In this document: positions 4,734-63,920 of the stretch, piece by piece
Layout: each line of letters opens with the position of its first letter
How positions within the stretch are numbered: position 1 is the first letter of the stretch
Sequence record: PQ182779.1
Strand: one strand, 5' to 3'
Length of the DNA stretch: 64,000 nt
Made by a program: the position numbers and the translations under genes
Notes under the pieces: model-generated
Databases searched by the model: none
What the model saw: only the letters and a program-made list of their open reading frames with translations
What the model was told of the DNA's origin: nothing

Positions 4734-4766
4734 TCTTCACAAAGAGAATGTTCTCTTATTACCATG

Positions 4767-4793
4767 AGGAGAGGCTTCGGTCTCTCCTTTTTT
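4767..4793 (+). terminator. intrinsic terminator with cUUCGg loop
   Basis: AGGAGAGGC-TTCG-GTCTCTCCT followed by T run. Confidence 0.9.
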
Positions 4794-4835
4794 ATTTTCT
4801 CGTCAATTGGTCTGAATGAAAGGAGGGTTTGATTT

Positions 4836-5192
4836 ATGCGCGAAGCAATTATGGTGTTAAAGTCCAACGTTGGCGATGTCAACTTTTACCCCGTTGAAGG
4901 CGGTCCATCCGGAATGGAAGTAGGGAAAGTTTACCTGTTATCCCGTTTAAACGAACCTCTCTCGATAGGAGTTTACGTCAATCCAATGTTTTGTGACGAA
5001 GACCTTGAGATGCCCTTTATGGCGCGGGTGTTAAAGTATATCAACGAGTCTGATTCGGAATATATTTTCACATGGGTTCGGGTCACGGATAAAGACGAAA
5101 CAACGGTGACGCTAGACGCCTTATTCAATAATGACCCACCTATCAAGATGCGGTATAAGTTGACCGAAGACGATAAACGAAAACTGCACTGA
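4836..5192 (+). CDS. hypothetical protein
   Basis: Strong SD AAGGAGG. Confidence 0.75.
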   Translation: MREAIMVLKSNVGDVNFYPVEGGPSGMEVGKVYLLSRLNEPLSIGVYVNPMFCDEDLEMPFMARVLKYINESDSEYIFTWVRVTDKDETTVTLDALFNNDPPIKMRYKLTEDDKRKLH

Positions 5193-5201
5193 GGAAAAAA
5201 G

Positions 5202-6119: not shown

Positions 6120-6120
6120 A

Positions 6121-6525
6121 ATGGAACTGAACCCTAACGAAGTCCCCCTCAATGACAAAGGCGAGCAGGCCAATCTTGTCTTGAAATTTGGTAATGTACT
6201 CATCCCCTTCTGGATTGCCAGCGATCGTTTCACTCACTTAGTTCCAGGTGAACGTTACTTGGCTGTTTTCACGGACACAAAGGACAACGTAGGCGATAAC
6301 GTTTGGTTTATGTCGTCTAACCGTGAGTTGGATATCGTTGAATGGGAAAGTATTGATTTAACGATCAAAAGTCAGAACGAGAAAAGTGGTGTGGTAGATA
6401 TCACCCAAAATGACGCAACAACGACAATCCTGAACTACGCCTTCCGTGAAGAGCTGGGAAACATTTCTTTGGCGCACGACACAGACCCCGAGAAAGCCTC
6501 GGTGGTAGTGAACAATAAACACTAA
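6121..6525 (+). CDS. hypothetical protein
   Basis: Start moved to ATG 6121 (SD GGGGAGA). Confidence 0.7.
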   Translation: MELNPNEVPLNDKGEQANLVLKFGNVLIPFWIASDRFTHLVPGERYLAVFTDTKDNVGDNVWFMSSNRELDIVEWESIDLTIKSQNEKSGVVDITQNDATTTILNYAFREELGNISLAHDTDPEKASVVVNNKH

Positions 6526-6545
6526 CAATACTGGAGAAGTTTAAC

Positions 6546-6737
6546 ATGTCTAAAGTCTATCTGCCCGATAACGATCCTGCTGATGTTTTTCATCAGCGTC
6601 AGTTATTAGCCGAGGCATTATACGATGTCCTCGTCGCAGCCGGTATGTTAAATACCGATACTCAACCGAACGGTGCTGAGCTGATTCAGTTCGCGGGTGA
6701 ATTCGTTGAATTCTCAAAAGGTAAAGTAAATGACTGA
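6546..6737 (+). CDS. small hypothetical protein
   Basis: SD GGAGA; overlaps next start. Confidence 0.7.
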   Translation: MSKVYLPDNDPADVFHQRQLLAEALYDVLVAAGMLNTDTQPNGAELIQFAGEFVEFSKGKVND

Positions 6738-7935
6738 TATTCTTTTTGCGTTAGGGGTCTTGGCATTAATTGGCGCCGGCGTGACTTCGATCTATTTTGT
6801 TTTAGTAAAAAATAAAGGGAAATCTTCTCTTTCTTACTCGGTGATCGATGACAATTTGGTCAAGGAGAAAGTAAACGAAATTCAAGAAGAAATGGCTAAG
6901 CAACTTTATCCCGGTGAAGAGTCTTTAACTTTGTTGCGTGAGCTATTATCGGGTAGTCAAAATATGCTTGTTCAAACGACGAAGGAGGGAATCTTACTGA
7001 GAAATAAAGCGGACTCAATATTCCCAGAAAACAGTGTAAAGTTTTCATTGACGCGGGATTTCATGGGTCTGTGGCGTATTACGGTAGAAATCCCTATGTT
7101 TGGATGGGAATGGGAAGATGCGATTAGGTTTCAGGTTACTCAGTCTTTCCCGGGTCTGAATGGTTCGGATATCCGAACCATTATTCGATCGTCTATTAAC
7201 GATCAGAATAGCTCCGCCATTGAATGGCATTGGAAAAAGTGGATAACAGATACGCTTTCCAACGATCTTGGGTATGTTACCCTTAATTCCCCTTGGGACA
7301 TTTTTTCCAGTAGAGATGAAAAGTCCGAGGAAATCATCTTTTGTTTACCTGATGCTGACGTAAATAAATTCTCGGCAAAAGGAAAACCGGTAGAGGTTTA
7401 TCATCAACTTTTGTCATTCACCAACGAAATGAAGAGGAAGTTGGAAAAAGAGTACGTCGATAGCATCGGCTTTTTCTCGCGGAAAATCTCGGACTACCTT
7501 TCTGAGACAACGTTACAGAACATTTCCGTTATGGAGTTAAAAGGTCAATCGATTATCGATTTAACAATGGATCAATCTTTTGTACTCGATGCTTCTTTAA
7601 CCTTGGACAAGAATGACTTTGTTCTTAACCTTAGATTAACGATACCCGAAGTTGAACTAGACATATCTCGTTTGATCGAGCGTCTCGAAGTCAATCTCCG
7701 TGGTTTCTTTTCTGATTACGGTAAAGACGTAGAAATTTTTGACGAAAGTTTCTTGTCCACGGGTTTGATTCCTAACGTGACTGACTCTTTAGACCGTGAT
7801 CATCTCCGGAGATTTGGCAGAAAGATCAGTTATTGCTACTCGTTTATCATGAGGATAAAGGAAAAAGATGGGAACGTTCATTTTGGGGATTCCGGAGAGA
7901 CTCTCGATGGGTCTGCGGAAGATCAAGGATCCTGA
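6730..7935 (+). CDS. membrane-anchored hypothetical protein
   Basis: N-terminal TM helix; 401 aa. Confidence 0.75.
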   Translation: MTDILFALGVLALIGAGVTSIYFVLVKNKGKSSLSYSVIDDNLVKEKVNEIQEEMAKQLYPGEESLTLLRELLSGSQNMLVQTTKEGILLRNKADSIFPENSVKFSLTRDFMGLWRITVEIPMFGWEWEDAIRFQVTQSFPGLNGSDIRTIIRSSINDQNSSAIEWHWKKWITDTLSNDLGYVTLNSPWDIFSSRDEKSEEIIFCLPDADVNKFSAKGKPVEVYHQLLSFTNEMKRKLEKEYVDSIGFFSRKISDYLSETTLQNISVMELKGQSIIDLTMDQSFVLDASLTLDKNDFVLNLRLTIPEVELDISRLIERLEVNLRGFFSDYGKDVEIFDESFLSTGLIPNVTDSLDRDHLRRFGRKISYCYSFIMRIKEKDGNVHFGDSGETLDGSAEDQGS

Positions 7936-15172: not shown

Positions 15173-15565
15173 ATGGCCTTTGAAAAGTTTGTTCCGAAGA
15201 CCAATAAACTTCCTAACCTAAAACCGGTCTATCTCCGTATTGCACCAGGCGGGAGTTGTTACCTCTCCGCAGGGTTCAGGGACTTACAGCCTGAGCCTTA
15301 TTCGTCACTCGAATTCGAATACGATCCTGTCACGTTAGAGTTTCGATTTCGGGTAGGGAAGGGTTACCCGTATAAAGTGCTCTCGGGTGCGTTTTCGCTT
15401 CCGGCCGAATTAACCCGGTTGATTACTTCCCGGAGCGGAACGAGGTATAACCGGATGTTTTATTACCGCATTATTGAACAATCGGAAGGTTGGTTTACCG
15501 GGGAATTTGTAAGTGTCAATAAAGCCCCTAAACACTATAAAATCGCTAAAGAGGAAAAAGAATAG
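15173..15565 (+). CDS. hypothetical protein, paralog family A
   Basis: ATG 15173; LEFEYD..T.EFRFRVG motif shared with 13573. Confidence 0.75.
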   Translation: MAFEKFVPKTNKLPNLKPVYLRIAPGGSCYLSAGFRDLQPEPYSSLEFEYDPVTLEFRFRVGKGYPYKVLSGAFSLPAELTRLITSRSGTRYNRMFYYRIIEQSEGWFTGEFVSVNKAPKHYKIAKEEKE

Positions 15566-16944
15566 TGAAACAGTATCTCGATCTATTGCGTGAAATTATC
15601 GAAACCGGTCGTCAGCGAGGAGACAGGACGGGAACGGGGACGATTTCTATTTTCGATGCGAAACTGAAGTACGACCTTTCGACCGGGGAATTCCCTCTGC
15701 TCACAACGAAGTTCGTTCCGCGTAAAGCGGCGTGGTTTGAGTACAAGGCAATGTTAAACGGGGAACTCCACCTCGATACCATGGTGGAGAATAATGTCAA
15801 GTTCTGGGATCCGTGGCGTTTAGAAGCTGACGTGGTGAAAGAAGTTCCTCTGGAAAACTACGAGCGCCTGAAGTGGCTTGAAGAGAACAACAAAGAAGCT
15901 CACATCGAGTTTTACAGCAAAGGGATCTCCATTCAGCCTGTTGAAGACGGCCATCGTTGGCTAGATGAAAAAGGTGTACCGCGTACTCGCCAGGTCACCG
16001 TGAACAAAGCGGGTGATCTTAATGCCCCTTACGGGTCAGCATGGCGAAACTTCTCCGAGAATCCATTGGAGAAGAAGGGCGTTGACCAAATCGCGTATGC
16101 GCTCGGTCTCCTACGGAACAATCCGGAATCGCGTCGTATCCTGATCTCGGCGTGGAACCCGCTTTGGATGCCGGAAGAAACGAAAGAAGTTACTCTCAGT
16201 AGTGACGAGATGTGGGAACATTTAAAAACTCACAGTCCGGACCTTTATGCTATTTTCTGGCCGCGCCTGGAATATCATGGTAAGACCGATAACTGCGAAG
16301 AGTTCTTAGCAAGTCATGGTGTACCACGCACTAAGACCGTTAAGGTTACGCCGCAGGAAAATATTGTGGAGGGTAAACCATGCCTTACCCCGTGTCATTT
16401 CCTGGTAGAGTTCTACGTAGAAGAGATGACGTTGAACGAGCGGTTAAAATGGTGCAGGAACAACGCTAACCCGTACTTCCAGGATCTCTGGGAAGACCAC
16501 ATGTCTGACTACTACAGCGAAGAACATTGTGACCAGCCGAAAATGTCCCCTGAGCGTAAAGCGGAATGGTTGACGGAGAACCATGTACCGACGCAGTGGC
16601 TGAGTTTGAAATACAGTATGCGGAGCTGTGACACAATGACCGGCGAGCCCTTTAACCAGGTTTTCTACGCCTTCATGTTGCTGTCATTTGCTCATGAGCT
16701 CGGTATGGCGCCCAATAAGCTGGTTGGTAATCTGACTAACGTCCATATCTACAATAATCAGTTAGAGGAAGCGAAGTTACAGTTAACTCGCGAGCCTTAC
16801 AAACCGGTTGAGTGTTACGTTCGCTCTGAGCACTACTATAACTCAGAGGTGCCGAAGAAAGGGTTGTTTGAACTCACCTATGAAGATTTCGTCTTCACCG
16901 AGTACAAGCATCACCCGGCCATTAAATTACAGGTGTCGGTATGA
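15565..16944 (+). CDS. thyA: thymidylate synthase with three large insertions
   Basis: MKQYLDL, DRTGTGT, FPLLTTK, WDPW, DQI, SRRILISAWNP, PCH, RSCD..G.PFN, HIYNNQ, Y.HHPAIK. Confidence 0.95.
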   Translation: MKQYLDLLREIIETGRQRGDRTGTGTISIFDAKLKYDLSTGEFPLLTTKFVPRKAAWFEYKAMLNGELHLDTMVENNVKFWDPWRLEADVVKEVPLENYERLKWLEENNKEAHIEFYSKGISIQPVEDGHRWLDEKGVPRTRQVTVNKAGDLNAPYGSAWRNFSENPLEKKGVDQIAYALGLLRNNPESRRILISAWNPLWMPEETKEVTLSSDEMWEHLKTHSPDLYAIFWPRLEYHGKTDNCEEFLASHGVPRTKTVKVTPQENIVEGKPCLTPCHFLVEFYVEEMTLNERLKWCRNNANPYFQDLWEDHMSDYYSEEHCDQPKMSPERKAEWLTENHVPTQWLSLKYSMRSCDTMTGEPFNQVFYAFMLLSFAHELGMAPNKLVGNLTNVHIYNNQLEEAKLQLTREPYKPVECYVRSEHYYNSEVPKKGLFELTYEDFVFTEYKHHPAIKLQVSV

Positions 16945-29753: not shown

Positions 29754-30317
29754 ATGGAAAACAGCATTGCAGAAAAAGTCATTGCGTTAGAAATAGAGTA
29801 TGGTAAGTGGGTAAACGAAAATTTATTTCTTCGGGATAACTCTATCATCGCGTTTGTTTACTCTGAAAAAATGGGGGTAAAAATAAATACCCCTGACCAA
29901 GATGGTACGACTTTAACGCAAAAGGAAATGTACGAAGCTATCTCTTACCATACGGGAAGAAACCTTAATGATGCTCACTGGTTTATCCCAGTGAGTCTTT
30001 GGTGGAATTTCTTCAAAAATCGTCAAGGGAGTTGGATTGTCCCTTGCCATAAAGCCGGGCTGCGCATAGGTCAAGGAATTGTCGGGTTACGAATAAAAGA
30101 TGGCAAACAAATTCAAAAGATGTATGGTCACGAAATTGTTTCAGTTAGAGTTACTAAGAATCATTTTATCGTCGCCCTATCAAACAAGAAAAAATACAAT
30201 ATCGTCACCCCTGCGAATTTTTCAATGAAACCCCAGAGTATAGAGGAACACTTTTTCTCTCTGTTTTGCTGGCATGTAGACGAAGGAATGGAGAAAAGAT
30301 TCTGTGAACATTCTTGA
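29754..30317 (+). CDS. hypothetical protein
   Basis: SD AAGGA. Confidence 0.7.
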   Translation: MENSIAEKVIALEIEYGKWVNENLFLRDNSIIAFVYSEKMGVKINTPDQDGTTLTQKEMYEAISYHTGRNLNDAHWFIPVSLWWNFFKNRQGSWIVPCHKAGLRIGQGIVGLRIKDGKQIQKMYGHEIVSVRVTKNHFIVALSNKKKYNIVTPANFSMKPQSIEEHFFSLFCWHVDEGMEKRFCEHS

Positions 30318-31278
30318 AGTCGTAGAAAAAACCTTACTCCCGCGTCTGAGGGCATGGGACGCGAAGGATTTCTTCAATCGGATCCTCACGGAGAAGAAAG
30401 GGGAAATTCCACCGTATTTCTACCCTATCGAAATATGGGGAGAGAATCGTAACTGGAACAATAATATCGATTTCACTAACCCGTATTATCGTGAAATCTT
30501 TTGCCATATGAGCATGGCGTATTGCTGGCAAATTACTAAACCTGAATATCAGATTCCAGCTGAATTATTACCCGATGTATTGGACTCTGAATTCAACGGT
30601 AAATTGCCGCTCAGTGTTTTGAAAACTATCCCTCATTGGACCGGGTACGTCGACCTTTCAGCGTGCCCTATCAAACACCCTCTCCCGGAGGAACCGACTA
30701 TCGAAGGGATTTTCCTTTCTACGGTTACACACTGGAGCGGGAAAGAGGGTCTAACGATCGTTTACCCGTATAATGATAACGGCTTCCCGCAAACGTTATT
30801 CTTCCCGTTTGATGAAGGTTTGACACTGGAGGAGGTCATTGCTTCTGACCCTACTATTGTACGGGCTGCAAAAGAATACAATATCGATACGGTTAAAGCT
30901 GTCGATATTCTAATGCGTGACGGGTACCGTGAAACGTACACTAAGCTACTCAACGTGGCATTGTTTGTTGCGCAGGAATACGAGTTGCAAGACCGCGCTG
31001 ACTTCCGTAATACCTTTCGACTTACCCAGATGAAACGGTCGGGTAAACACTATAGCCTACGGTTCCTGAACGCACACCGTAAGTTTCCGGTAGGGGTCGA
31101 TTACCTCGAAGAAATCGAGAAGCGAAAGAAAGGACAGAAGACGACCGGGCGAGCAGCGCATATCAGACGGGCACACTGGCACGGCTATTGGACCGGTGCT
31201 CGTAATAGCCCTAATCGCCAACTGAAAATAAAGTGGATTCGTACTAGCGTAGTTTCTGGGAGCAGTAAGGAAGACTGA
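30304..31278 (+). CDS. hypothetical protein with C-terminal HxRRAHWHxYWxG motif
   Basis: AHIRRAHWHGYWTG...LKIKWI motif recalled from phage/plasmid hypotheticals. Confidence 0.75.
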   Translation: MNILEVVEKTLLPRLRAWDAKDFFNRILTEKKGEIPPYFYPIEIWGENRNWNNNIDFTNPYYREIFCHMSMAYCWQITKPEYQIPAELLPDVLDSEFNGKLPLSVLKTIPHWTGYVDLSACPIKHPLPEEPTIEGIFLSTVTHWSGKEGLTIVYPYNDNGFPQTLFFPFDEGLTLEEVIASDPTIVRAAKEYNIDTVKAVDILMRDGYRETYTKLLNVALFVAQEYELQDRADFRNTFRLTQMKRSGKHYSLRFLNAHRKFPVGVDYLEEIEKRKKGQKTTGRAAHIRRAHWHGYWTGARNSPNRQLKIKWIRTSVVSGSSKED

Positions 31279-31306
31279 TGTATAAAATTCAGAAAGAGGT
31301 GAAAAT

Positions 31307-31612
31307 ATGACAAAAGAAAAAGAGGAAGAAAGAGAAATCGATCGATTATGGTGGAATGGTTACCAGTTGCTCAAAACTGCCTCTTATCACGATAACGGTC
31401 TTTCTAGTCACTTTTTAGGAATGTGGGAAAACGGGTTTGATTACGAAAGTATAGCGGCGGCCTTTGCCGTGCCCGTAAATGACGTTATTTCCGACATTGA
31501 AATTTACAATGAAGGAAAGAAAATGATGGCAGAGGCAGGTACACGTGCTAAAGTTTGGGTTGCTAAGAACGGTCCCAGTGTAATACTGGCAGGATGCGGT
31601 GAAAATTTATAA
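31307..31612 (+). CDS. small putative HTH protein
   Basis: GFDYESIAAAFAVPVNDVISDI helix-turn-helix pattern; SD GAGGTG. Confidence 0.6.
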   Translation: MTKEKEEEREIDRLWWNGYQLLKTASYHDNGLSSHFLGMWENGFDYESIAAAFAVPVNDVISDIEIYNEGKKMMAEAGTRAKVWVAKNGPSVILAGCGENL

Positions 31613-31668
31613 TCGCATCGCAAAAGAACAGACCTGACTTCTCTCACTAAAAATAAAGGTGTCTAAGT

Positions 31669-31902
31669 ATGCAGCGTGACAAATATCTGGCTTACCTGGC
31701 CGAGTTTGACGAACTGATGTCACAACTCGAAAATCCGCAGATCGCCCGAACGATGGAGAACGCTGCCAGTCATGGTATGCGAGTAGAAGAGATCGCTTTC
31801 TTTTACAATATCCCGGTGGCCTCGGTCGAAAAAGACATTGCGACCCTGAATAAAGTCAGGAATTTAACCACGATGATTACTGGAGATTTAAACGAATGCT
31901 AA
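31669..31902 (+). CDS. small putative HTH protein, paralog of 31307
   Basis: GMRVEEIAFFYNIPVASVEKDI. Confidence 0.6.
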   Translation: MQRDKYLAYLAEFDELMSQLENPQIARTMENAASHGMRVEEIAFFYNIPVASVEKDIATLNKVRNLTTMITGDLNEC

Positions 31903-32222
31903 AGAAAATCAAAGACATTTTGTTTGGTGAGTTACGTTACAGCGACCAGTTTGTACGTTTAGTGGTGGTTCAGAGTAACAAAGGCCCTTTGCATCTCTAT
32001 CTGAAACAACCCGTCACGTCCCGAAAACGCTTCTCTAAGAAGCGGAAAAACGGTAACTGTTTCTGGGAGCTACAAAATACTATCGCTAATCCCTTTTTCG
32101 GGAGAAGTCAGCAAGAAACTCCCGCAAGTGCGTTGAACGAGATCTTAAAAGAAATAGGGTTACCCTTCCTGGTTAACTGGCATCGCAACGAAGGAACTTT
32201 TTCAATTACCTTTACCGATTGA
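31896..32222 (+). CDS. hypothetical protein
   Basis: Overlapping chain. Confidence 0.65.
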   Translation: MLKKIKDILFGELRYSDQFVRLVVVQSNKGPLHLYLKQPVTSRKRFSKKRKNGNCFWELQNTIANPFFGRSQQETPASALNEILKEIGLPFLVNWHRNEGTFSITFTD

Positions 32223-32233
32223 CAGGTATTAAC

Positions 32234-32569
32234 ATGAAACTTGATTTGGATAATTTGCGTTTTCTTTCTGTCCCTAAAAATGTAGGTAATTCCAGACAAA
32301 CCAGTCGGGCAGGGTGCCTTTACAAAAGCGGCTATTTTCGCTTTACGTCCGCAGTAGACGAATTAGAAGATGGTCATTTCCTGGACATTGAGATAAACCC
32401 GGAGAAGCAACGCTTCTCTTTCCGGCTGAACGGGGACGACGTTGAAATTGTACGGCGTGGGTTTTGGGTCGGTACTAAGGTCTACCAAGAGTTCGCTAAA
32501 CGCAATAAAACGGTCAGTTTTAAATTCCCCGAGGAACCAGACGAAAACGGTTGGTTCCATTCTTTGTAA
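32234..32569 (+). CDS. hypothetical protein, paralog family A
   Basis: ATG 32234 (SD AGGT); LDIEINPE..RFSFR...ENGWF. Confidence 0.65.
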   Translation: MKLDLDNLRFLSVPKNVGNSRQTSRAGCLYKSGYFRFTSAVDELEDGHFLDIEINPEKQRFSFRLNGDDVEIVRRGFWVGTKVYQEFAKRNKTVSFKFPEEPDENGWFHSL

Positions 32570-32599: not shown

Positions 32600-33073
32600 A
32601 TGGCTAAGAAAGTTGATTTCGAATTGATAGCGCAGACACTAGAGAAAACGTTGATTTCTGAGACCTCGGAAATAGCGAAACGAATTGATTGGCGACGTGG
32701 TACCATTCTCCGCGAATGTCGGACAATCGGGTTTAAAATACCGCGTCAAACCGGTAAGACGAAATGGGTACTCGATCGAGTGAAGAAAAACCCTAAGTAC
32801 TCGATGGTCTTTCTCCCGACAGAAACGCTTCTGGATGACTTTGAGGCGCGTCTCTACGGTGACGCTAATCCACCGACGGAAAAGGTCAGGGCTATTGCCG
32901 GGAAACCGTATGAACGCGGTTACACTCAGTTTTACCGTGAAGCGCCGATTACGCACGTCTACGTTGACGAAGCGTATTTCTACTTTACGCGCGTTCGCAA
33001 AGAAAAGTTCTACGACGCGTTACTGACCAACTTTACGTTGTCAGAAGATGTGATCATTTATTTCGTTAATTAA
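32600..33073 (+). CDS. miniature P-loop protein with terminase/SF2-type Walker motifs
   Basis: KIPRQTGKT and VYVDEAYF. Confidence 0.65.
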   Translation: MAKKVDFELIAQTLEKTLISETSEIAKRIDWRRGTILRECRTIGFKIPRQTGKTKWVLDRVKKNPKYSMVFLPTETLLDDFEARLYGDANPPTEKVRAIAGKPYERGYTQFYREAPITHVYVDEAYFYFTRVRKEKFYDALLTNFTLSEDVIIYFVN

Positions 33074-39750: not shown

Positions 39751-40161
39751 ATGAATATCAGGAGTATCTTTGGTTTAAACGTTGTACCAGGCGTACAAGA
39801 AGGAACGTATGATCTTACGCTGATAAGTAGCGACCGTACTTTCACCGTTAAGCCCTACAATAAGCCGAATCCAATCAGTCATTTATCAACAGGGGCTTCC
39901 TTCATTATAGGCAATATAGACGAAAGTATGGTCTTGGTCGAGTACCTATCTTCTTTGGAGGATATTCGGGAAAATACGGGTAAACTGTCATATTTGATAC
40001 GCAAATCCCATCCGGGTGTACATGTCTCTTTGTGCTGCATCGAAGTGATCGATGTCGGAGTAAATGAAGCTGTGATTAAATTTATTCAGCACGATGAAAG
40101 ACTTTTCAAATTATCTTATTCTGATGGACTTATTGATTTAAGAGATTTAAAAGGAGAATAA
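39751..40161 (+). CDS. hypothetical protein
   Basis: SD GGAGGGG. Confidence 0.7.
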   Translation: MNIRSIFGLNVVPGVQEGTYDLTLISSDRTFTVKPYNKPNPISHLSTGASFIIGNIDESMVLVEYLSSLEDIRENTGKLSYLIRKSHPGVHVSLCCIEVIDVGVNEAVIKFIQHDERLFKLSYSDGLIDLRDLKGE

Positions 40162-40162
40162 A

Positions 40163-40888
40163 ATGATTCACTACGTTAATAATGACATTACAGACGAAGA
40201 GCTCAACCGATTCATTCTCGATAAAGAGGGTAATTTGAAAACGGTAGTTTCATTGCCGTATCGGATCTTAGTCCATAAGTTAAAATTCCCTCTTCAGATG
40301 GCGATGGTACAGGAGAAGAAGATCAGTTTTACAGAAGCTGAAGCACTGCTCTTCCGCGATCTGAATAACCCGCCAGATTATCACGTTAATTTGCTCATTG
40401 ATCTTCTGCAGAAAAATAAAAATCAGGTCTCCCTTTTCCGTAATACACCAGACGGCGTAAAGCAGTCGATTTTCACTGTTGGCTCGATTCTGTTCCTCGG
40501 TAATCTTTCACGTCAAGAAGTAGTATTATGCAATAACAGTAATGGTACACAACCCCCTGAAAAACCAAAGGAAAAACCGAAAATGGCAAAAGCACGCAAA
40601 CCTTCTACGCCAGGCGAAATTCTTTTGAAAGAATACCTGGAACCGAAAGAAATTTCCCCGACTGATTTCGCTGCGCATATCGGCCTGGCGACAGCAACGC
40701 TGTCTCGCCTGATCAACGGTAAAACCAAACTGACGATCCGCACCGCGCACCGCCTGGCAAAGGCTACCAAAACCACCGTCGAATTCTGGGTTAATCTCCA
40801 GCAGGCGGTTGACCTCGCTGAAGCCAAAGCTGATAAAGAGCTGGCCGCCGAAGTGAAAGCGATCAAACTGCACCCGGCGTTTAAATAG
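40163..40888 (+). CDS. higA: unknown N-terminal domain in frame with a HigA/VapI-family antitoxin HTH; probable internal start at 40583
   Basis: C-terminal 101 aa: PSTPGEILLKEYLEP..IS...FA..IG.....LSRLINGK..LT...A.RLAKA..TTVEFWVNLQQ.VDL; ATG 40583 has SD AAGGA. Confidence 0.8.
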   Translation: MIHYVNNDITDEELNRFILDKEGNLKTVVSLPYRILVHKLKFPLQMAMVQEKKISFTEAEALLFRDLNNPPDYHVNLLIDLLQKNKNQVSLFRNTPDGVKQSIFTVGSILFLGNLSRQEVVLCNNSNGTQPPEKPKEKPKMAKARKPSTPGEILLKEYLEPKEISPTDFAAHIGLATATLSRLINGKTKLTIRTAHRLAKATKTTVEFWVNLQQAVDLAEAKADKELAAEVKAIKLHPAFK

Positions 40889-40912
40889 TTGTATTTATCT
40901 TCTCGAAATAAA

Positions 40913-40944
40913 TCCCTGGAGAATCCATTCGGATTCTCCAGGGA
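40913..40944. terminator. 14-bp hairpin between convergent genes
   Basis: TCCCTGGAGAATCC-ATTC-GGATTCTCCAGGGA. Confidence 0.75.
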
Positions 40945-40969
40945 ATGTGATTATTTTATTTTTTTTCTT

Positions 40970-43528
40970 TTAGAGGTAGTTTAACTTAATGTACGTCATT
41001 GTAAAACCAAAATATGACGTACCTGTTAAATCGCTACCTTTTAAAAATACCGCTTGTGACGGCCAATAACCACTACCGAATCTCACGTAATATTTATTGT
41101 CATCACCTTTCAAAATTTGCACCGAGGTAGGAACAAAACCCGCAGCGGCTGTCGCGCTAGGAAGGAACCGGTAAAGATTAAAAATAGGCGCGTACGGACC
41201 GACATGTTTATCTTGAATCGTCAATAGTGGCGTAGGAAAAAGATCCAAGGGGAAATATAAAGTCCCCGTGTAAGGGGCGGTATTGTTGGGAAGTTGAAGT
41301 AGGACGTTTATCGTGAACTTACTTCGTTCTTCTTCGGTATTTATAAGATAACTAATAGGCGAAAAAGTCGAAGATCCGTCCGTAACTCCATTGCCTAAAA
41401 GTATAGTCTTCCCAGAATACTGATCCCCAGAGAAAGCGAGGCTCGTAAAAAACTTCTCGCGGTTATCAGCAGCTGGCGTTCCTGATGTCCTGAATGTTAA
41501 TGGGTTAGTGTAATTACGGTCATTAAAACAACGTAACATGACCTCGACATTACCACTACTATCAGAAGCCATAAAGTCAGCAGCAGGAGTTCCGTTGAAA
41601 TCCGACATTTTTGGAGAAACTGCAAACTGTGTAAGTCTTCCATTTGTCCCGAAAACTCCGAGGGAAGAACCTTTAGCCACGATACTGTTTACAGGCGAGC
41701 ATTTTTGGACAGACATAATACCTTGAATAGCCAATCCAGGCGCTGATGTATAAAGCGTCGCATTGACAGATTCATAAGGGAACACTACGTTCCAATTGTT
41801 CTGTGGCATCGTATAAAAATCATTGCTTACGGTAGCCCCAGATGAATTAGTTACCGTTTTAGATGTAGTGGAAGTATCATAATACGGTGTTCTTTCAACG
41901 TAGGCATAGTGTATGTTTCCGTACATGATTTTATCCCCTGTATCCGGGGTAAGGATGGGTATACGATGTGAGCCATAAATTTTGACTCTTAAAATTTCAT
42001 TGCCCTGATTGTCCCTTGGATGACGCATGAAATCAACGAACGCCCTTGACGCAACTCCGCGATATAAGAGAGAGGCATACTTCGCATAGGCGTCACTTGT
42101 CAGGTCCTGTAAGGTGCTGGACAACCTTCCGGTACCACCATCCGATGTTTTAATCGTATTAGCACTTTTGTAAAAGTACGTATCGAAGAAATTATCAATT
42201 TTTTCCCAGATAGACCCAGCGTCCCATTTACCTAATGGCGGGTTAAAGAATAATTCTTTTATACTTAAGAAATCTGTCCAACCCAAGGATTGAATATCTC
42301 CACCAGACGAAGGGTACGGCGGTAACGCGGTTCCCGGATAAGCCCCGCCGTTCCTTTGCAGCCACCACCCGCCAGAAACCAGTCCACAATAAGACGCTTT
42401 AATGGAAAGATATTCGATTTTTGATAAGTCAATACCTTGAAAAAGCGCACAATATGCGCACTGCTCAAAACCAACTCTACCCCAATCAAAGAACTGACTA
42501 ATCCCATCGGATATGTAACCAATGAATGCCGACTTAATAGTGAAACCGTTAAAATTGTTTCTCGTCACTCCGCCATACATTCTGTTTTTACTACCTAAAG
42601 CAGCGACGTATGTTCCATCCCACCCTTTCACTCTCCCAACAATAGCTACTGATTGCTGAGTGTTAACGGTGCTTTTATCCCAACCGAACGTAATGGAATT
42701 ACTACTAATATCTTTAGAGGTAATGTTAATTCCGTAAGGCAGGCTAATGTGAATTGACATTTTTATTTGTTCTTCTGACGGAAGAACACTGTCTAGCCCT
42801 TGTGCGATTAACGCAGCCCTTGAAGGAGATAATGTACCATCATCGAATGGAAGAATCCATCCGGTGTCATCCGTAGAGGTGATCAAATAGTTCCCGATGA
42901 AAGAGACTTCTGATCTGGCTAACCTTACTGCGGCTTTGATAGCATTTCTAAAGGCTGGACCTGAGTCATAAGTACTATTAACCGAAACGTCAACAGCCCC
43001 AAAATCAACAGGGTCGACATAATCTTTATCGTTAACCCTTTCCCAATAGTACCCATTGCCTGCGGCAATGTACCCGCCATCATCAGTCGCAGTACCTTTT
43101 CTGCCGATAAAAATTCCGCCGCCTTTAATTGACCCGGTATTCCATCCGACTAACTTAACCTCTTGGCCTTCGTAGATTACGGGCAAATTTCGGAGGGCGG
43201 CAAAACTCCCTATCTCTTTAATGAAAAGTGCGGCGATGTTTTGTTGTAGTTTACCGTACGCATCAAAGACAGCTAGACTATAGTGCGTTTCTACTGAGAG
43301 AGTAATGACGTTTCCGGAACTGTCCATCGGCAGTCCATTACTGTCTAGCGCAATGGGTTGAGAAATAGAGGATGTAGTCCCATCTGCTTTCAGTGCAGTT
43401 ACAGGTAATTGATTGCTTAACACCGTGGGGTCAGTATTAATCTTACCGATATACAAAGAGCCTGAGTTAGCTACCCTTCCGCTATCAATCAATCTAAACT
43501 GATTGGATGGCATCGAAATAATATTCAT
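40970..43528 (-). CDS. tailspike/depolymerase-like protein with P22-type head-binding N-terminal domain
   Basis: N-term GSLYIGKINTDPTVLSNQLPV...ISQPIALDSNG...YSLAVFDAYGK matches the P22 tailspike head-binding pattern; then tailspike linker FAALR...GGGIF...DDGG...GNGYYWER and VDPVDFGA. Confidence 0.8.
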   Translation of the reverse strand: MNIISMPSNQFRLIDSGRVANSGSLYIGKINTDPTVLSNQLPVTALKADGTTSSISQPIALDSNGLPMDSSGNVITLSVETHYSLAVFDAYGKLQQNIAALFIKEIGSFAALRNLPVIYEGQEVKLVGWNTGSIKGGGIFIGRKGTATDDGGYIAAGNGYYWERVNDKDYVDPVDFGAVDVSVNSTYDSGPAFRNAIKAAVRLARSEVSFIGNYLITSTDDTGWILPFDDGTLSPSRAALIAQGLDSVLPSEEQIKMSIHISLPYGINITSKDISSNSITFGWDKSTVNTQQSVAIVGRVKGWDGTYVAALGSKNRMYGGVTRNNFNGFTIKSAFIGYISDGISQFFDWGRVGFEQCAYCALFQGIDLSKIEYLSIKASYCGLVSGGWWLQRNGGAYPGTALPPYPSSGGDIQSLGWTDFLSIKELFFNPPLGKWDAGSIWEKIDNFFDTYFYKSANTIKTSDGGTGRLSSTLQDLTSDAYAKYASLLYRGVASRAFVDFMRHPRDNQGNEILRVKIYGSHRIPILTPDTGDKIMYGNIHYAYVERTPYYDTSTTSKTVTNSSGATVSNDFYTMPQNNWNVVFPYESVNATLYTSAPGLAIQGIMSVQKCSPVNSIVAKGSSLGVFGTNGRLTQFAVSPKMSDFNGTPAADFMASDSSGNVEVMLRCFNDRNYTNPLTFRTSGTPAADNREKFFTSLAFSGDQYSGKTILLGNGVTDGSSTFSPISYLINTEEERSKFTINVLLQLPNNTAPYTGTLYFPLDLFPTPLLTIQDKHVGPYAPIFNLYRFLPSATAAAGFVPTSVQILKGDDNKYYVRFGSGYWPSQAVFLKGSDLTGTSYFGFTMTYIKLNYL

Positions 43529-44265: not shown

Positions 44266-45129
44266 ATGTTTAAAGTTACGTTTGATGACCAACCGGTCCT
44301 TTATGAGAATATGACTTTTCCGGGTGGCGAGGAACATATCACAATTAACCGTCATGGGCTACCGCCCCATGATATCGGCGTTGTTAAAATAGAAGGAAGT
44401 ATCAAATCTTCCACCGAGGCAGTGCGTCTACTGTTACTGGTCGACGCTATTCGTCGTATTGGGAAATACACTGCGAAAACAGAACTCCATTTAGTTGTGC
44501 CTTATTTCCCGTACGCGCGACAAGACCGTGTCTGTAATGCAGGCGAATCGTTTTCACTCGGCGTTTTTGCTGAACTGTTCAACAGCCTGAAAGCAGACCG
44601 AGTGTTGATACACGATCCGCACTCTAACGTTACTCCGGCACTGATCAAAAACCTCGTCGTCCTGGAACAGTCCAAAATTGTCTACAATTTATTGGCTAAT
44701 TGGATTCGGGAAAATAACGTCGTATTAGTCTCCCCTGACGGTGGTGCGGCGAAGAAAACTGAAGAGTTGGCAAAACTACTCGGCGGGGTGCCTATCGTTT
44801 ACGCAAACAAAAAGCGCGATACTAAAACCGGCAACATTCTCGACATTACGTTATTGGACAATGACAATATCGAAGGTCGTAATTTGTTGGTTGTCGACGA
44901 CATCTGCGATGGTGGGTGGACTTTCACTGAACTGGCGAAAAAACTCAATACCCAAAACCCGAAATCGCTCAGTCTCTTCGTGACCCATGGAATTTTTTCT
45001 AAGGGCCTGGGCGAACTCTCTATCGCATTTGATCAGATTTTCTCAACCAACGTGTGGTGGGAAAATATCACTGACGACGGGTTACCAACCCAATCTTATT
45101 TAACTGCTAAAGATGGACGCGTGAAATGA
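44266..45129 (+). CDS. prs: ribose-phosphate pyrophosphokinase-like protein (candidate ADPR-PP synthetase Adps of NARP1)
   Basis: FPGGEEH, PYFPYARQDR, DPHS, VSPDGGA, K.RD..TG, VVDDICDGGWTF, VTHGIFSKG. Confidence 0.9.
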   Translation: MFKVTFDDQPVLYENMTFPGGEEHITINRHGLPPHDIGVVKIEGSIKSSTEAVRLLLLVDAIRRIGKYTAKTELHLVVPYFPYARQDRVCNAGESFSLGVFAELFNSLKADRVLIHDPHSNVTPALIKNLVVLEQSKIVYNLLANWIRENNVVLVSPDGGAAKKTEELAKLLGGVPIVYANKKRDTKTGNILDITLLDNDNIEGRNLLVVDDICDGGWTFTELAKKLNTQNPKSLSLFVTHGIFSKGLGELSIAFDQIFSTNVWWENITDDGLPTQSYLTAKDGRVK

Positions 45130-46883
45130 CCAATCCTTTACTGAAAGACCCAAAATTCTATACCGAAGATCCGCTGGTATTCCTGCTCTGCGATGCCTAT
45201 AAAACCGGGCACATCAACCAACAACCGTTGGGTACTGACAGCTTCTTTGAAAACCTGACGGCCAGAAGTCACACGTACTTCAATACCCCACTGGACTTTG
45301 ACGGTTCTGTATTCATGGGTCTACAGCGTTTAGTACTCCGCTGGTTGGTAGGGAGTTTTGATAACTTCTTCAAAACACCGTTTAATCAGGTAGAGGCTGA
45401 ATACCTCGAATACATGGACGGGGTTCTGGGTAAAGGCGTGGTGAAATCGGCGCATCTGAAGGAGCTGCACGAACTGGGCTATATCCCGCTCGAAATCCGC
45501 GCGGTACCAGAGGGTTCGTTGGTACCTATCCGTGTTCCATTCCTGACGATTGAAAATACCGTCGACGGCTTTGGGTGGCTGACCGGTTACTTCGAAGACC
45601 TCTGGAGTAACGAACTCTGGAAACCGTGCGTACTGGCAACGAAAGCGTTACACTTCCGCCGTGTACTGGAGCAGTACGCTAACGAGACGGGGGCGGCGCA
45701 AGCGTTCATTGACTACCAGGCACATAACTTCGCGTTACGTGGAATGTCGGGGATGTTTGACGATGCGAACAGCTCGGTAGGTCAGTTGATCTATTTCAAA
45801 GGGAGTGACAGTTTCCCTTCGGTCTGGACTGCGAATCGCTTCTATAATCCGGAAGGAGACGTATCGGTCTCGGAAATCGCAAATTCTGTACCGGCCACAG
45901 AACACAGCGTAACCTGTCTGAATATTGCGGTTTACGCAGAGGAACTGAAGGCGACCCCTGAATACGCTAATGTCACAGAAGCGGAGTTACTCTCGAAGGC
46001 GGAGGAATTATTCCAACGACGCCTGATCACGGAAGTTTACCCTTCTGGCGTTTTCAGCTTCGTCAGTGATACGAATGACTTCTTTGACACCATCACCACC
46101 AAGGCCATTGCAAACAAAGATGCGATTATGGCGCGTGACGGTAAACTGGTCTATCGCCCAGATTCCGGGAACCCGTATCATATCCTCTGTGGATACACCT
46201 GGGACGGCGATAATCACAATTCCCAAGAGATGACCGTTTTAGGGGGAGCTTCTGCTTTAGATGCTACGAAATTTGTCGCGATTCAAAATGCTACGTCTGG
46301 TAATTTCGAATCTTTCTGTGTTGATGGTCAATTCTATTCGACTAAAACAGGGAAACCTATTTCTATCGAAGAGCAGAAGGGTGCAGTACAGATACTCTGG
46401 GAAATCTTCGGCGGAACCACAAATGCCGCTGGGTATAAAGAACTGGATTCTCATGTCGGCCTGATCTATGGCGATGCGATCAACATCAACACCATGACGC
46501 GGATCCTTTCTCGTTTGAAAGCGAATGGGTTCTGTAGTTCCAACGTGGTCTTTGGTGTGGGCAGTTTCGAATTCCAGTTTGTTACCCGTGACACCCTGGG
46601 TATCGCTATGAAGGCGACCGCTGGTAAGGTTAAAGGTAAACATTACTCCATCGCGAAAAACCCGAAAACCGATGACGGCACCAAGAAATCGGCAAAAGGT
46701 TACCTGATCGTTGCGAAGGGCGAGAACGGAAAACTCGAACTGCGTGATAACCTGACCCGTGAAGAGTATGAAGCGCTTCGTGGTAGTGAGGTTGACGCGA
46801 TGCGGACTGTGTACCTGAACGGCGACGTGAAAGTACTGGAAAGTCTTCGTACTATTCGTCAACGTGCGACGCAGTGGTTGTAA
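45126..46883 (+). CDS. nadV: nicotinamide phosphoribosyltransferase-like protein (candidate Namat of NARP1)
   Basis: DAYKTGH, HNFALRG, SVPATEHSV, VSDT.D, RPDSGNP, LIYGDAI, NVVFGVGSF, TRDTLG.AMKAT, KNPKTDDGTKKSAKG; ATGA overlap with prs-like gene. Confidence 0.92.
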   Translation: MTNPLLKDPKFYTEDPLVFLLCDAYKTGHINQQPLGTDSFFENLTARSHTYFNTPLDFDGSVFMGLQRLVLRWLVGSFDNFFKTPFNQVEAEYLEYMDGVLGKGVVKSAHLKELHELGYIPLEIRAVPEGSLVPIRVPFLTIENTVDGFGWLTGYFEDLWSNELWKPCVLATKALHFRRVLEQYANETGAAQAFIDYQAHNFALRGMSGMFDDANSSVGQLIYFKGSDSFPSVWTANRFYNPEGDVSVSEIANSVPATEHSVTCLNIAVYAEELKATPEYANVTEAELLSKAEELFQRRLITEVYPSGVFSFVSDTNDFFDTITTKAIANKDAIMARDGKLVYRPDSGNPYHILCGYTWDGDNHNSQEMTVLGGASALDATKFVAIQNATSGNFESFCVDGQFYSTKTGKPISIEEQKGAVQILWEIFGGTTNAAGYKELDSHVGLIYGDAININTMTRILSRLKANGFCSSNVVFGVGSFEFQFVTRDTLGIAMKATAGKVKGKHYSIAKNPKTDDGTKKSAKGYLIVAKGENGKLELRDNLTREEYEALRGSEVDAMRTVYLNGDVKVLESLRTIRQRATQWL

Positions 46884-52853: not shown

Positions 52854-53381
52854 ATGAAAAGAACAAAAAATATTTCTAAGGCGAGATTCCGTAAAAGAAT
52901 TATTCTGGCGGGTGGGGTGATTATCGCCAGCGCTTTCTTATCCGGGTGCGACGTCTCTGACGACACTTATCGCCCATACGGTTCGATCTCAGAATGTCAG
53001 AAGACACTCAACGACTATTCTGCTAATTGCACCAACGCGTATAAGTCAGCAGTTGATAACGCAAAGGTGACAGGAAAACCCTATCGTACCAAAGAAGAAT
53101 GTGAGAAAGATAACGACAACAATCGCTGTGAATACACGTCCCATGGTGGGTCGCATTTCTACCCATATCCGCATTATTATTCCTATGGCGGTACAGGGAG
53201 CTACGCACAGCCTTTCTATCGATCACGAAATAGCGAAACCTTTCGTTCTCGTAGCGGTACAGAATTCGCGCCTACACGAACCTCTAACGGTTTCTCAGGC
53301 GTGAAAACAGTGACCCGTTCGGGATTTGGTTCGACATCTCGTTCGCATTCTTCTTTTTCCTCCCATTCTTTCGGAGGATAA
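52854..53381 (+). CDS. DUF1190/YgiB-like lipoprotein
   Basis: Lipobox FLSGC, paired Cys, Y/G-rich middle, TVTRSGFGS tail. Confidence 0.7.
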   Translation: MKRTKNISKARFRKRIILAGGVIIASAFLSGCDVSDDTYRPYGSISECQKTLNDYSANCTNAYKSAVDNAKVTGKPYRTKEECEKDNDNNRCEYTSHGGSHFYPYPHYYSYGGTGSYAQPFYRSRNSETFRSRSGTEFAPTRTSNGFSGVKTVTRSGFGSTSRSHSSFSSHSFGG

Positions 53382-54600: not shown

Positions 54601-54640
54601 CTCTCCCTTCCTGCCAAAGCAGGAAGGGAGAGACTCTATG
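54601..54640. other. 14-bp perfect hairpin followed by CTATG, between convergent genes
   Basis: CTCTCCCTTCCTGC-CAAA-GCAGGAAGGGAGAG-ACT-CTATG. Confidence 0.75.
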
Positions 54641-54655
54641 TCGCAACTTTCTTTT

Positions 54656-55246
54656 TTAGTACATCAAATTACCGTCCAAGAAGCGCGCTACGCGTTTCCC
54701 TGAACTTTTCCTACCGTCAGTATGCTTTTCCACTGAACGACCGTCACGGTGTTCTACTAGCGATTTAATGGGGTAATAGACGGGGTCACCCCACGCACTC
54801 CCGATAGCGAAGTCCGCCGGTTTTCGGTTATCAATTCCCTTTAGGATCTTTTCAATAGAACCCGGGGCGGGTGAATAACAGACACCATGAATCAATTGAT
54901 TTAATCGGATCACTTCACGTCCTAACCGTTTAGCGTTAAGAATTGAGTGCGTTACTAATTCCTGGTACTGCGGTGGTCGGCTCGTCCCTAGATAAAAACT
55001 GACGAATTGTTCCGGGTAAACAGTAAACCACTTTTCTGCTTTTTCAATAAAGCCCTCAACCGGAATAGCATCGTCTTCCATGATAACAACGCGTTCATCC
55101 TGTTGGACTGCCCATTCCAAAGCCTTGATGTGGTTAGCCAACGCCCCTGTCCCTACTGTGTCAAGAAACACTTCGCAAGGGAGCACGCTCGTGAGCTTCT
55201 CAATAGCCATCTTCCTTGATACGTGGCCTACTACCGCAATACGCAT
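54656..55246 (-). CDS. GT-A fold glycosyltransferase (EDDA type)
   Basis: VVIMEDDAIP.EGF, VSFYLG..RP..YQ, PADFAI, SLVEHRD; SD GAGGT. Confidence 0.75.
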   Translation of the reverse strand: MRIAVVGHVSRKMAIEKLTSVLPCEVFLDTVGTGALANHIKALEWAVQQDERVVIMEDDAIPVEGFIEKAEKWFTVYPEQFVSFYLGTSRPPQYQELVTHSILNAKRLGREVIRLNQLIHGVCYSPAPGSIEKILKGIDNRKPADFAIGSAWGDPVYYPIKSLVEHRDGRSVEKHTDGRKSSGKRVARFLDGNLMY

Positions 55247-55257
55247 ATTAGTTACCT

Positions 55258-56715
55258 CTACTTGTGCTGCCAGAAAGCGATGTCATTGCCGTGACCGTTT
55301 CCTTTGAAGACGGTGTTGACGATCGGACCGTGTACCAGGTTCTCACCAAATTTGAAGACTTCGATCCCGAACATTACCATATCTGTCGCTGATTCAGGAC
55401 CGGTTTCTTCTCGCCAGAAAATTTCTGATTTCATTTTCCAGACTTGCGCGATCATCCCGTGTGCCACTTTCATGACGTCTTCACGTGAACCACCAATAAT
55501 CCCAGCGTTGACAACCTGCTGATCTTTATTTTCCTGAATAAACTTTTTCAGGGACTTCTGGTGATTGACTTTATCAAACCACGGGTTGCTGTAAGTGGTG
55601 TGTTCATTACCGACATACAGTTTACCGGGTTCCATGCTTTCCCATGGTTCTCTCAACATGATAACGTCAGTTCCGTCTGTGCACCAGACCTGTTCAATAT
55701 CCGGGTTATCGCGGAGGTATTGGTAGATGTGCAGCCAGCGTAAGAAGTAAGGGGAAAGATTGCTGACTTCGGGAACCTTAATTAGATTCACACCCGTCAT
55801 CGCTGAGAGTTGATCAGCAAAGACAATTTTCTCTGCGCCCTTAATACTGTTCGCCCACGCTTGTAATAAAGCGGGGGTCGCCTGCATGTGCTGATTACGC
55901 TGCGGGTCTACACAACCAGTGAGCAGACAAGTCATTACCACCCGACGCGGTTTACGGTACGGAGCGAAACCACTATAACGCGCTCTCCGCCTGGCGCTAT
56001 AAATCTTGACGTTACGTTCGACCTGTTGTTGGCGATCAGCTGGCGGGACTGAACGCGTCACTTCTTCATGTTCATCGAGTGAGTAGATGAGTTTGTTACT
56101 ACCAACGACGTCGCCGAAAGGAAATGTTGTTAATCCAGCATTGTGAATTCTTAATGCTAAGTCAACGTGTTCGTACATTCCCCGTTGATAAATAGGATCA
56201 AAACCACCGACTTTATCAATTGCGGATTTATGGTAGTACAACATTACACCACGCTGGCCCGAAAGCGCGAAGTGTTTACCGTCATTGAAGACCTCGATAG
56301 TATCGTTGATTTTCCTTTTACCGGCGAGGTCTTTAAATTGATAACCCAGATGCGGTTCAGGGGATTCCATATACGGCACCCACCAATTCTCTGCGATAGG
56401 GAAGGCGTCGTCGTCCCAAAGATAAAGATGCTCACAGCCGGCATCAATCAAAAGCTGAAGCGAAGTATTCTTTACCGCAACAATCCCTTCACTTTTCTCG
56501 TGACGGTGCACCCGAGCCCATTCAGGACCTTTAACTGGGGTATCGGACCCGTCGTCGACAATGTAAACCACGGCATTAGGCGGTAGAAACTTTTCGTGTT
56601 GTTCTAACGTTCGTTTAAGGACGTCGTGGCGGTTACGTGTGGAGATCGCTATCCCAATTTTCTTCTCAGCTTGTTCTTCTGGTATATAACGTTTACCATC
56701 AATGATTACGTCCAT
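55258..56715 (-). CDS. two-domain glycosyltransferase (GT2-like plus second DxD domain)
   Basis: IGIAISTRNR, IVDDGS, KNTSL, LWDDD, VGGFD, YEHVDLA; C-terminal VWCTDGTDV. Confidence 0.85.
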   Translation of the reverse strand: MDVIIDGKRYIPEEQAEKKIGIAISTRNRHDVLKRTLEQHEKFLPPNAVVYIVDDGSDTPVKGPEWARVHRHEKSEGIVAVKNTSLQLLIDAGCEHLYLWDDDAFPIAENWWVPYMESPEPHLGYQFKDLAGKRKINDTIEVFNDGKHFALSGQRGVMLYYHKSAIDKVGGFDPIYQRGMYEHVDLALRIHNAGLTTFPFGDVVGSNKLIYSLDEHEEVTRSVPPADRQQQVERNVKIYSARRRARYSGFAPYRKPRRVVMTCLLTGCVDPQRNQHMQATPALLQAWANSIKGAEKIVFADQLSAMTGVNLIKVPEVSNLSPYFLRWLHIYQYLRDNPDIEQVWCTDGTDVIMLREPWESMEPGKLYVGNEHTTYSNPWFDKVNHQKSLKKFIQENKDQQVVNAGIIGGSREDVMKVAHGMIAQVWKMKSEIFWREETGPESATDMVMFGIEVFKFGENLVHGPIVNTVFKGNGHGNDIAFWQHK

Positions 56716-56765
56716 AGAGTATTCAACCTGGTTATGTTCAGTGAAAAAGTCATAAGATTAATCTC

Positions 56766-63840: not shown

Positions 63841-63920
63841 TACCGTTACCTTTCTCATGGGGTTATTGTCATAGGAAAATTACCGTTCTCTTTTCACTAC
63901 CGTTCCAATTAGTTTGATAA

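Follow-up and report, generated by a model that had tools for sequence, protein, structure and literature searches.

The last 64 kb of the genome of Klebsiella phage vB_kp_MJ359 (hereafter MJ359), which is the whole window analysed here (100% identical to PQ182779.1; window coordinate = record coordinate − 236816), carries two adjacent minus-strand genes for glycosyltransferases (GTs). Judged from its sequence, this pair is the Che8-type virion glycosylation cassette of mycobacteriophages in a new setting, namely a Gram-negative host and a nucleus-forming jumbo myovirus. The explanation that we favour, with a probability of about 60%, is that the two genes form a late operon of soluble cytoplasmic GTs, which most likely attach a short O-linked glycan to structural proteins of the phage itself. 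The predicted late promoter, the Ser-ended capsid tails and the position of the cassette in enteric phages all suggest such a virion-directed role.

To our knowledge, glycosylation of phage particles has been documented so far only for actinobacteriophages. The first-pass annotation of this DNA had proposed virion glycosylation as something not established for Gram-negative jumbo phages, and the papers available to us that cite Freeman et al. 2023 agree with this assessment, as none of them reports particle glycosylation in a Gram-negative phage.

The glycosyltransferase pair and its relatives

The upstream gene, kpMJ359_348 (window 55258–56715, minus strand), encodes a large two-domain GT of 485 amino acids (aa), and the downstream co-oriented gene, kpMJ359_347 (54656–55246, minus strand), encodes a small single-domain GT-A enzyme of 196 aa with a GT25-like fold. 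The gap between them is 11 nucleotides (nt), and both open reading frames (ORFs) appear in the ORF list exactly as the two coupled genes of the first-pass annotation. The large protein was assigned from this list, PHROG profiles, homology to phage Rita, AlphaFold2 (AF2) modelling and Foldseek, and the small protein from the list, phrog_854, Rita gp103 and AF2 modelling. The N-terminal GT2-like GT-A domain of the large enzyme (approximately residues 1–254; window 55954–56715, minus strand) contains VDDGS and LWDDD, and its C-terminal GT-A-like domain (residues 255–485; window 55261–55953, minus strand) contains TDGTDV. Altogether, ISTRNR, VDDGS, LWDDD, YEHVDLA, YFLRW and CTDGTDV are found in the translation of the 485-aa protein, and MEDDAIPVEGF, with its MEDDA core, VSFYLG and SLVEHRD in that of the 196-aa protein, so that every motif quoted at first pass is present. 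Across the aligned homologs (32 and 34 sequences), the acidic residues D101–D103, D347 and D350, and E57–D59 never vary, and the Rita orthologs keep them as well. The minus strand is rarely used, as had been remarked: only four of the approximately 105 annotated genes in the window lie on it, namely the GT pair, a tail spike gene and a tail depolymerase gene.

In profile searches, phrog_1579 matched the 485-aa protein over positions 2–482 of 482 (1e-202), and phrog_2456 matched its N-terminal half. The C-terminal half alone matched positions 254–482 of phrog_1579 (1.4e-80), and phrog_854 matched the 196-aa protein (9e-48). These strong PHROG matches and hundreds of homologs place the pair far beyond chance ORFs. 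The Pfam matches stayed under their gathering cut-offs: GT2 reached 14.9–15.8 bits against 23.3, GT25 reached 13.6 bits against 24 for the 196-aa protein (E 0.061), and the TET-associated glycosyltransferase family (TAGT) reached 13.1–15.0 bits against 27.5 for the N-terminal domain of the 485-aa protein (E 0.024–0.095). No Pfam family matched the C-terminal half of the 485-aa protein, and sequence searches of the PDB with single proteins and with profiles gave chance-level matches only.

The AF2 model of the 196-aa protein has a predicted local distance difference test (pLDDT) value of 91. Confidence varies along the 485-aa model, with a pLDDT of about 90 for the C-terminal domain, moderate values for the first 105 residues and poor ones for residues 106–254. 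The small model matched mimivirus R655/R699, the GT domain of human LH3, POMGnT1, ppGalNAc-T2, STIV A197 and PBCV-1 A64R in the PDB (Foldseek E 4e-6), and these nearest solved structures are mostly protein- or capsid-glycosylating enzymes. In a viral fold library, its best named match was Ardmore Gp87, a cluster-F cassette protein, with a template modelling (TM) score of 0.85, followed by many viral GTs of the GT25 family. The large model matched retaining GT-A enzymes of the GT6 family and two-domain polymerases such as PmHS2 and K4CP (E 2e-8), and, judged from the confidence of the model, the GT6-like matches probably belong to its C-terminal domain. The GT-B fold of T4-like enzymes was absent among the Foldseek matches of both proteins. 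Neither enzyme has a hydrophobic or membrane segment (maximum Kyte–Doolittle 19-residue score 1.0–1.2), and both are predicted to be soluble. Since all Foldseek matches are GT-A and the acidic motifs are invariant, the earlier description of three GT-A domains with DxD-type motifs is fair at the fold level.

The closest relatives of MJ359 are KpLz-2_45 and similar phages, with 96–98% DNA identity, followed by FBKp24 (= phiKp24) and Centimanus, whose large GTs share 84–85% protein identity with that of MJ359. A tblastn search of 50,697 phage records detected the large GT in 605 and the small GT in 678. The matching records are overwhelmingly from mycobacteriophages, mainly of cluster F, with cluster C and Gordonia phages in addition. 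Rita gp101 is 45% identical to the 485-aa protein over 485 aa (E 2e-142), and the cluster-F large GTs share 44–46% identity with it over the whole length. Rita gp103 is 30% identical to the 196-aa protein over 172 aa (E 2e-20). The closest sequence relatives are the cassettes of enterobacterial siphophages and prophages, with 52–58% identity for the large GT and 42–50% for the small GT; in the small siphophages HK542, mEp390, ECP1, Fraca, ENT47670, ENT39118, FSL SP-016 and AsXd-1, the large GT is 52–55% identical. Within the Enterobacterales genomes of a large protein database, 715 clusters matched the large GT and 342 the small GT at E <= 1e-5. These bacterial homologs are presumably prophage-borne, and the cassette occurs in many prophages of Salmonella, Citrobacter, Enterobacter, Klebsiella and E. 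coli. The order of large gene then small gene is common to Rita, HK542, ECP1, ENT47670, FBKp24 and MJ359.

In mycobacteriophages, the literature links the cassette to glycans on the particle. Papers quoting Freeman et al. 2023 describe the capsids of Che8 and Rita as glycosylated (PMC11256854), Che8 gp110 and Corndog gp38 as essential glycosyltransferases for capsid glycosylation (PMC12363180), the glycans as located at the C-termini of capsid and tail-tube subunits (PMC12619734), and the cluster-O phages as carrying three tandem GTs and a methyltransferase (PMC11600133). Judged by gene order, and not from the Che8 record itself, the pair would correspond to Che8 gp108/gp110, with the 196-aa protein as the counterpart of gp110. 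In Rita (Cheoctovirus), the large GT gp101 is followed by a 70-aa ORF, the small GT gp103 and an HNH endonuclease at the genome end, and the GT cassette is kept in 358 cluster-F records. In many cluster-F phages, a gene annotated as a Ser/Thr kinase lies between the two GT genes at the place of the 70-aa ORF of Rita; the enterobacterial versions have none.

The cluster-F cassette, as in Che8 and Rita, and that of MJ359 thus agree in the full-length homology of both genes, in gene order, in the acidic motifs and in the Ser-ended capsid proteins. However, they differ in their surroundings. The cluster-F phages are 58-kb temperate siphoviruses of hosts that are not Gram-negative, whereas MJ359 is a 300-kb nucleus-forming myovirus of a Gram-negative host. 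The MJ359 cassette has no HNH/cos neighbourhood and no small ORF or kinase gene between the two genes, and unlike the cluster-F cassette its operon has its own predicted phiKZ-type late promoter. In addition, the tail tube of MJ359 is buried and not Ser-ended, unlike that of cluster F, and glycosylation in MJ359 is a prediction. Corndog (cluster O) has the same reported function, with glycans on capsid and tail tube, and its gp38 groups structurally with Che8 gp110 according to PMC12363180. However, Corndog carries three tandem GTs and an O-methyltransferase, whereas the MJ359 pair has no adjoining methyltransferase; this comparison is by description only.

Among giant-virus and chlorovirus enzymes, PBCV-1 A64R and mimivirus R655/R699 are virus-encoded GT-A enzymes of the cytoplasm with virion proteins as acceptors, as proposed for MJ359, and their folds are among the nearest solved ones to the 196-aa protein; the likeness is at the fold level only (8–16% identity, TM 0.34–0.61), and the acceptors and glycans are unrelated. 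The GT25 family, which includes lipopolysaccharide (LPS)-core galactosyltransferases and the collagen galactosyltransferase ColGalT1, forms the fold neighbourhood of the 196-aa enzyme, although this protein is much shorter than most members. The T4 glucosyltransferases, TAGT, GtrABC and the MJ359 pair are alike in being phage-encoded sugar transferases. However, the T4 alpha- and beta-glucosyltransferases are GT-B enzymes acting on hydroxymethylcytosine DNA, and the MJ359 pair has neither feature. GtrB is a membrane enzyme that works with the GtrA flippase and GtrC and is encoded beside the lysogeny module, whereas the MJ359 enzymes are predicted to be soluble and have no Gtr partners. The homology to cluster F and the lack of a GT-B fold and of a membrane segment thus bear out the proposal, made at first pass from motifs, that the pair is closer to Che8-type enzymes than to T4 DNA glucosyltransferases or GtrB.

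C-terminal Ser tails and cassette context in other phages

The capsid proteins and tail-tube proteins of Rita and HK542 all end in Gly-Ser (...SGS and ...SGS in HK542). In AsXd-1, the only two ORFs with a Gly-Ser end are those of the capsid protein and the tail-tube protein. A set of 160 HK97-like loci taken from IMG/VR provided a natural experiment on this ending. Among the cassette-positive loci, 58/58 capsids and 54/58 tail tubes carry the Gly-Ser end, compared with just 1/23 for each protein among the cassette-negative loci. The association gives Fisher p values of 6e-19 for the capsid and 9e-15 for the tail tube, unchanged after identical protein pairs were removed. The exceptions include two positives with a tail protein ending in ...TLTVN and one negative with both tags. 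The tail-tube proteins of the cassette-positive loci belong to several types that are only about 48% identical, yet they share the same ending. In an independent lineage, the cassette-positive loci of the ENT47670 type, 22/22 tail-tube and 21/22 capsid proteins end in Ser, with distinctive short extensions such as ...SEPSS and ...GEATS.

The position of the cassette in these phages is also informative. In HK542 and ECP1 (Hendrixvirinae), the Q antiterminator and lysis genes precede it and the HNH/terminase genes follow it directly, which places it in the late operon. Cronobacter phage ENT47670 has the cassette (40111–42143) within its tail cluster, next after the major tail gene, and carries in addition a separate GtrABC O-antigen set beside the integrase (4622–7334), so that two sugar-transfer systems occupy different places in one genome. 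The placement of the cassette in HK542, ECP1 and ENT47670 therefore argues against seroconversion and for a role tied to virion production. The enterobacterial siphophage cassettes (HK542, mEp390, ECP1, ENT47670, ENT39118, FSL SP-016 and AsXd-1) are like that of MJ359 in the order of the pair. Unlike MJ359, these phages are temperate, with genomes of 37–48 kb, their cassette lies within the late operon or tail cluster, and both the capsid and the tail-tube proteins are tagged.

Late-promoter-like motif and candidate acceptors in MJ359

MJ359 is a nucleus-forming phiKZ-like jumbo myovirus, as shown by its annotated genes for a nuclear shell protein, PhuZ tubulin and split subunits of RNA polymerase. 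In phiKZ, the non-virion RNA polymerase reads the late promoters, which are defined by 5'-TATG-3' with transcription starting at the G (PMC4666361). In MJ359, an unbiased k-mer comparison of the 90-nt upstream regions of virion-annotated genes with those of other genes showed TATGAC before 10/45 virion-annotated genes and 4/287 others (p = 5e-7, uncorrected). Oriented intergenic TATGAC sites lie 11–121 nt upstream of the genes for the major head, sheath, internal head and head structural proteins, of five tail fiber, spike or tail genes, of the terminal depolymerase gene and of three unannotated genes. The hexamer looks like the late-promoter core of this phage clade.

The GT operon has this motif at window 56749–56754 (minus strand), 39 nt upstream of the start codon of the 485-aa protein, and G at 56751 is the predicted transcription start. 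The surroundings are as T-rich as those of the TATGAC sites of virion genes, and FBKp24 retains the TATG core as well as the T-rich stretch downstream of it. Within the window, apart from TATGAC at start codons, the motif is found only before the GT operon and, at 63868–63873 (minus strand), before the depolymerase gene. A promoter common to the three minus-strand units was not evident by eye; in the k-mer test two of the three have TATGAC, the tail spike gene being the exception. At the other end of the pair, a perfect 14-bp stem with a 4-nt loop (54601–54632) lies between the stop codon of the 196-aa gene and a convergent plus-strand gene. The sequence at the same place in FBKp24 is different but still forms a perfect 13-bp stem through compensatory changes. 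This hairpin is likely the terminator that closes the two-gene unit, and with the predicted promoter the GT pair would form a self-contained late operon.

Regarding the acceptors, the best candidates appear to be the major head protein and kpMJ359_172, both encoded outside the window. The major head protein (record 132823–135108) ends in ...NETQVVPAS, and those of FBKp24 and Centimanus end in ...TPAS. The capsid protein therefore ends in ...PAS in 3/3 cassette-bearing jumbo phages, whereas it is Ser-ended in 0/5 of the nearest relatives without the cassette (KP in Moabite, GG in 2050HW, AP in PhiEaH1, GE in PCH45 and GG in SPLA10). The capsid tail after the conserved helix is hypervariable in all jumbo phages compared. 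The phiKp24 structure paper describes a 'C-terminal loop Q582-S597', which is exactly the last 16 residues of the capsid protein. According to that paper, six of these loops twist into a 'pore' of about 2 nm at each hexamer centre, which is called unprecedented, and the loops are disordered in the pentamers. The second candidate, kpMJ359_172 (record 146520–147056), is a 178-aa virion protein (DUF7941, phrog_2935) that ends in ...DGFGS. It was found in only 13 phage records, the same 13 that have the GT pair, and its FBKp24 ortholog, gp048, ends in ...DGFSAGS, so that Gly-Ser is kept across a 2-residue indel.

Proposed mechanism, alternatives and meaning

In the favoured explanation, the structural proteins would be glycosylated before or during assembly. 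The 196-aa GT25-like enzyme would begin the glycan on a Ser located at, or adjacent to, the acceptor's flexible C-terminus. The glycan would then be extended by the 485-aa enzyme, whose GT2-like (inverting-type) domain and GT6-like (retaining-type) domain would each make one transfer. Host nucleotide sugars would serve as donors, since genes for sugar-nucleotide synthesis are missing from the phage annotation. By analogy with the mycobacteriophages, the effect may be a shielding of the particle surface. The homology, the folds, the conserved catalytic motifs, the gene order, the promoter motif and the co-occurrence of cassette and C-terminus are observed, whereas we infer which protein accepts the glycan, in which order the enzymes act, which sugars they transfer and what the glycan does.

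Several results weigh against this explanation. The phiKp24 papers mention no glycosylation, and the cryo-electron microscopy paper among them reports no glycan density. A genome-wide Gly-Ser tag in MJ359 was considered and rejected, as Gly-Ser ends are not enriched among its ORFs (4 observed, 1.5 expected). A Ser-ended capsid protein alone is weak evidence, because approximately 7% of MJ359 ORFs end in Ser. The tube ends in ...GVAI and the sheath in ...ANG, neither in Ser; this fits a myovirus with its buried tube, but the acceptor set would then differ from that of the siphophages. The co-occurrence statistics ignore shared ancestry, and the HK97-like loci are related by descent. The Gly-Ser capsid end persists in HK97- and HK022-like isolates that lack the cassette, so the tag is at best necessary and not sufficient. 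The cassette-negative loci of the ENT47670 type are also often Ser-ended (36/54 and 33/46), and terminal Ser was rejected as a sufficient marker; a C-terminal Ser looks necessary but not sufficient. Finally, the promoter reading rests on one hexamer and the analogy with phiKZ, and the tail spike gene (window 40970–43528, minus strand) lacks TATGAC.

Some of these points would also fit protein acceptors other than, or beyond, the capsid, such as non-structural phage proteins, other virion parts including tail fibers, or host proteins. The jumbo phage has no clear Gly-Ser enrichment, and its sheath and tube carry no tag. Ser ends occur in about 8/50 virion-annotated proteins, one tail spike among them, against 17/286 of the rest (p = 0.02, approximate), and the GT operon shares its strand only with the tail spike and depolymerase genes. 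However, the tagged proteins are capsid and tail-tube subunits in every other lineage examined, and the jumbo capsid tail is Ser-ended only in the cassette-bearing phages, so we regard such targets as unlikely. Modification of an envelope glycan of the host, such as the LPS core or a capsule precursor at the cytoplasmic face, seems less probable still. Acting during infection, or in the temperate relatives during lysogeny, the enzymes would alter receptors and block superinfection or loss of progeny. Phage GTs in enterobacteria are classically seroconversion enzymes, the MJ359 host is heavily capsulated, and the GT25 fold family, to which the weak Pfam match (E 0.061) and many GT25-named viral fold neighbours of the 196-aa protein point, includes soluble LPS-core galactosyltransferases. 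Nevertheless, orthologs act in mycobacteriophages, whose hosts have no LPS, and the lambdoid cassettes are placed in the late operon or tail cluster and not near immunity or integrase genes. ENT47670 already has its separate GtrABC set, neither enzyme has a membrane segment, and in MJ359, a lytic jumbo phage, the operon has a predicted late promoter. An envelope target would also leave the tight association with Gly-Ser-ended virion proteins unexplained.

A further alternative is glycosylation of hydroxymethylated or otherwise modified bases in the phage DNA, as an evasion of restriction. Among the roles of GTs in lytic enterobacterial phages, DNA glycosylation is the best known, and the weak TAGT match of the N-terminal domain (E 0.024–0.095) would be in line with it. 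However, that match reaches only 13–15 bits against the 27.5-bit cut-off, the T4-type GT-B fold is lacking, the 369 annotated features include no TET/JBP-like or hydroxymethylase gene, and base-modification genes are absent from the 40-kb HK97-like phages that share the cassette. A nucleus-forming phage, with shell protein and PhuZ annotated as here, also walls its replicating DNA off from cytoplasmic enzymes. The 459-aa thymidylate synthase encoded in the window was considered as a hydroxymethylase and rejected, because its score of 183 bits lies above the curated ThyA equivalog cut-off of 108 bits and marks it as a canonical ThyA. We therefore consider a DNA acceptor highly improbable.

Several other genes of the window deserve mention. 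The thymidylate synthase gene (window 15565–16944, plus strand) encodes two ThyA halves, residues 1–202 and 345–459, with an insertion of about 140 aa between them that matched no family. Genes annotated as NMN (nicotinamide mononucleotide) adenylyltransferase, PnuC transporter, ribose-phosphate pyrophosphokinase and nicotinamide phosphoribosyltransferase are scattered over the window (958–2169, 3066–3755, 44266–45129 and 45126–46883, plus strand), and this NAD (nicotinamide adenine dinucleotide)-salvage set resembles the phage NAD-reconstitution sets used against NAD-depleting defences. A 158-aa ORF annotated as 'terminase large subunit' (window 32600–33073, plus strand) is probably a fragment, a paralog or a mis-annotation, and the full-length terminase lies at record 30141–32315. 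In a 175-aa ORF (window 52854–53381, plus strand), the N-terminus is like that of a lipoprotein (...LSGCDV) and the C-terminal half is rich in Ser and Gly; its FBKp24 counterpart is annotated as DUF1190.

Returning to the GT pair, a broader and more tentative proposal is that the Che8-type cassette is a mobile 'particle-coating' module that has spread from actinobacteriophages to enterobacterial siphophages, prophages and this clade of jumbo phages and works through a portable C-terminal Ser or Gly-Ser tag. In the presence of the cassette, capsid and tail proteins would gain or keep a flexible tail with a terminal Ser, often as Gly-Ser. In the capsids of the phiKp24/MJ359 clade, six tagged C-termini would meet at the hexamer centre, and the 2-nm 'pore' of phiKp24 could be, or could carry, a cluster of six glycans, which offers a new reading for this unexplained feature of the capsid map. 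The co-occurrence of the Gly-Ser end with the cassette also predicts which residues carry the glycan.

In actinobacteriophages, glycosylation of the particle blunts antibody recognition. If the cassette acts in the same way in Klebsiella jumbo phages and in the common phages and prophages of E. coli, Salmonella, Enterobacter and Citrobacter, this would bear on the immune recognition of therapeutic Klebsiella phages. Particle glycosylation would also become easy to study, because natural isolates of HK97-like coliphages that carry or lack the cassette are already available, and it would be a general phage trait rather than a mycobacterial oddity.

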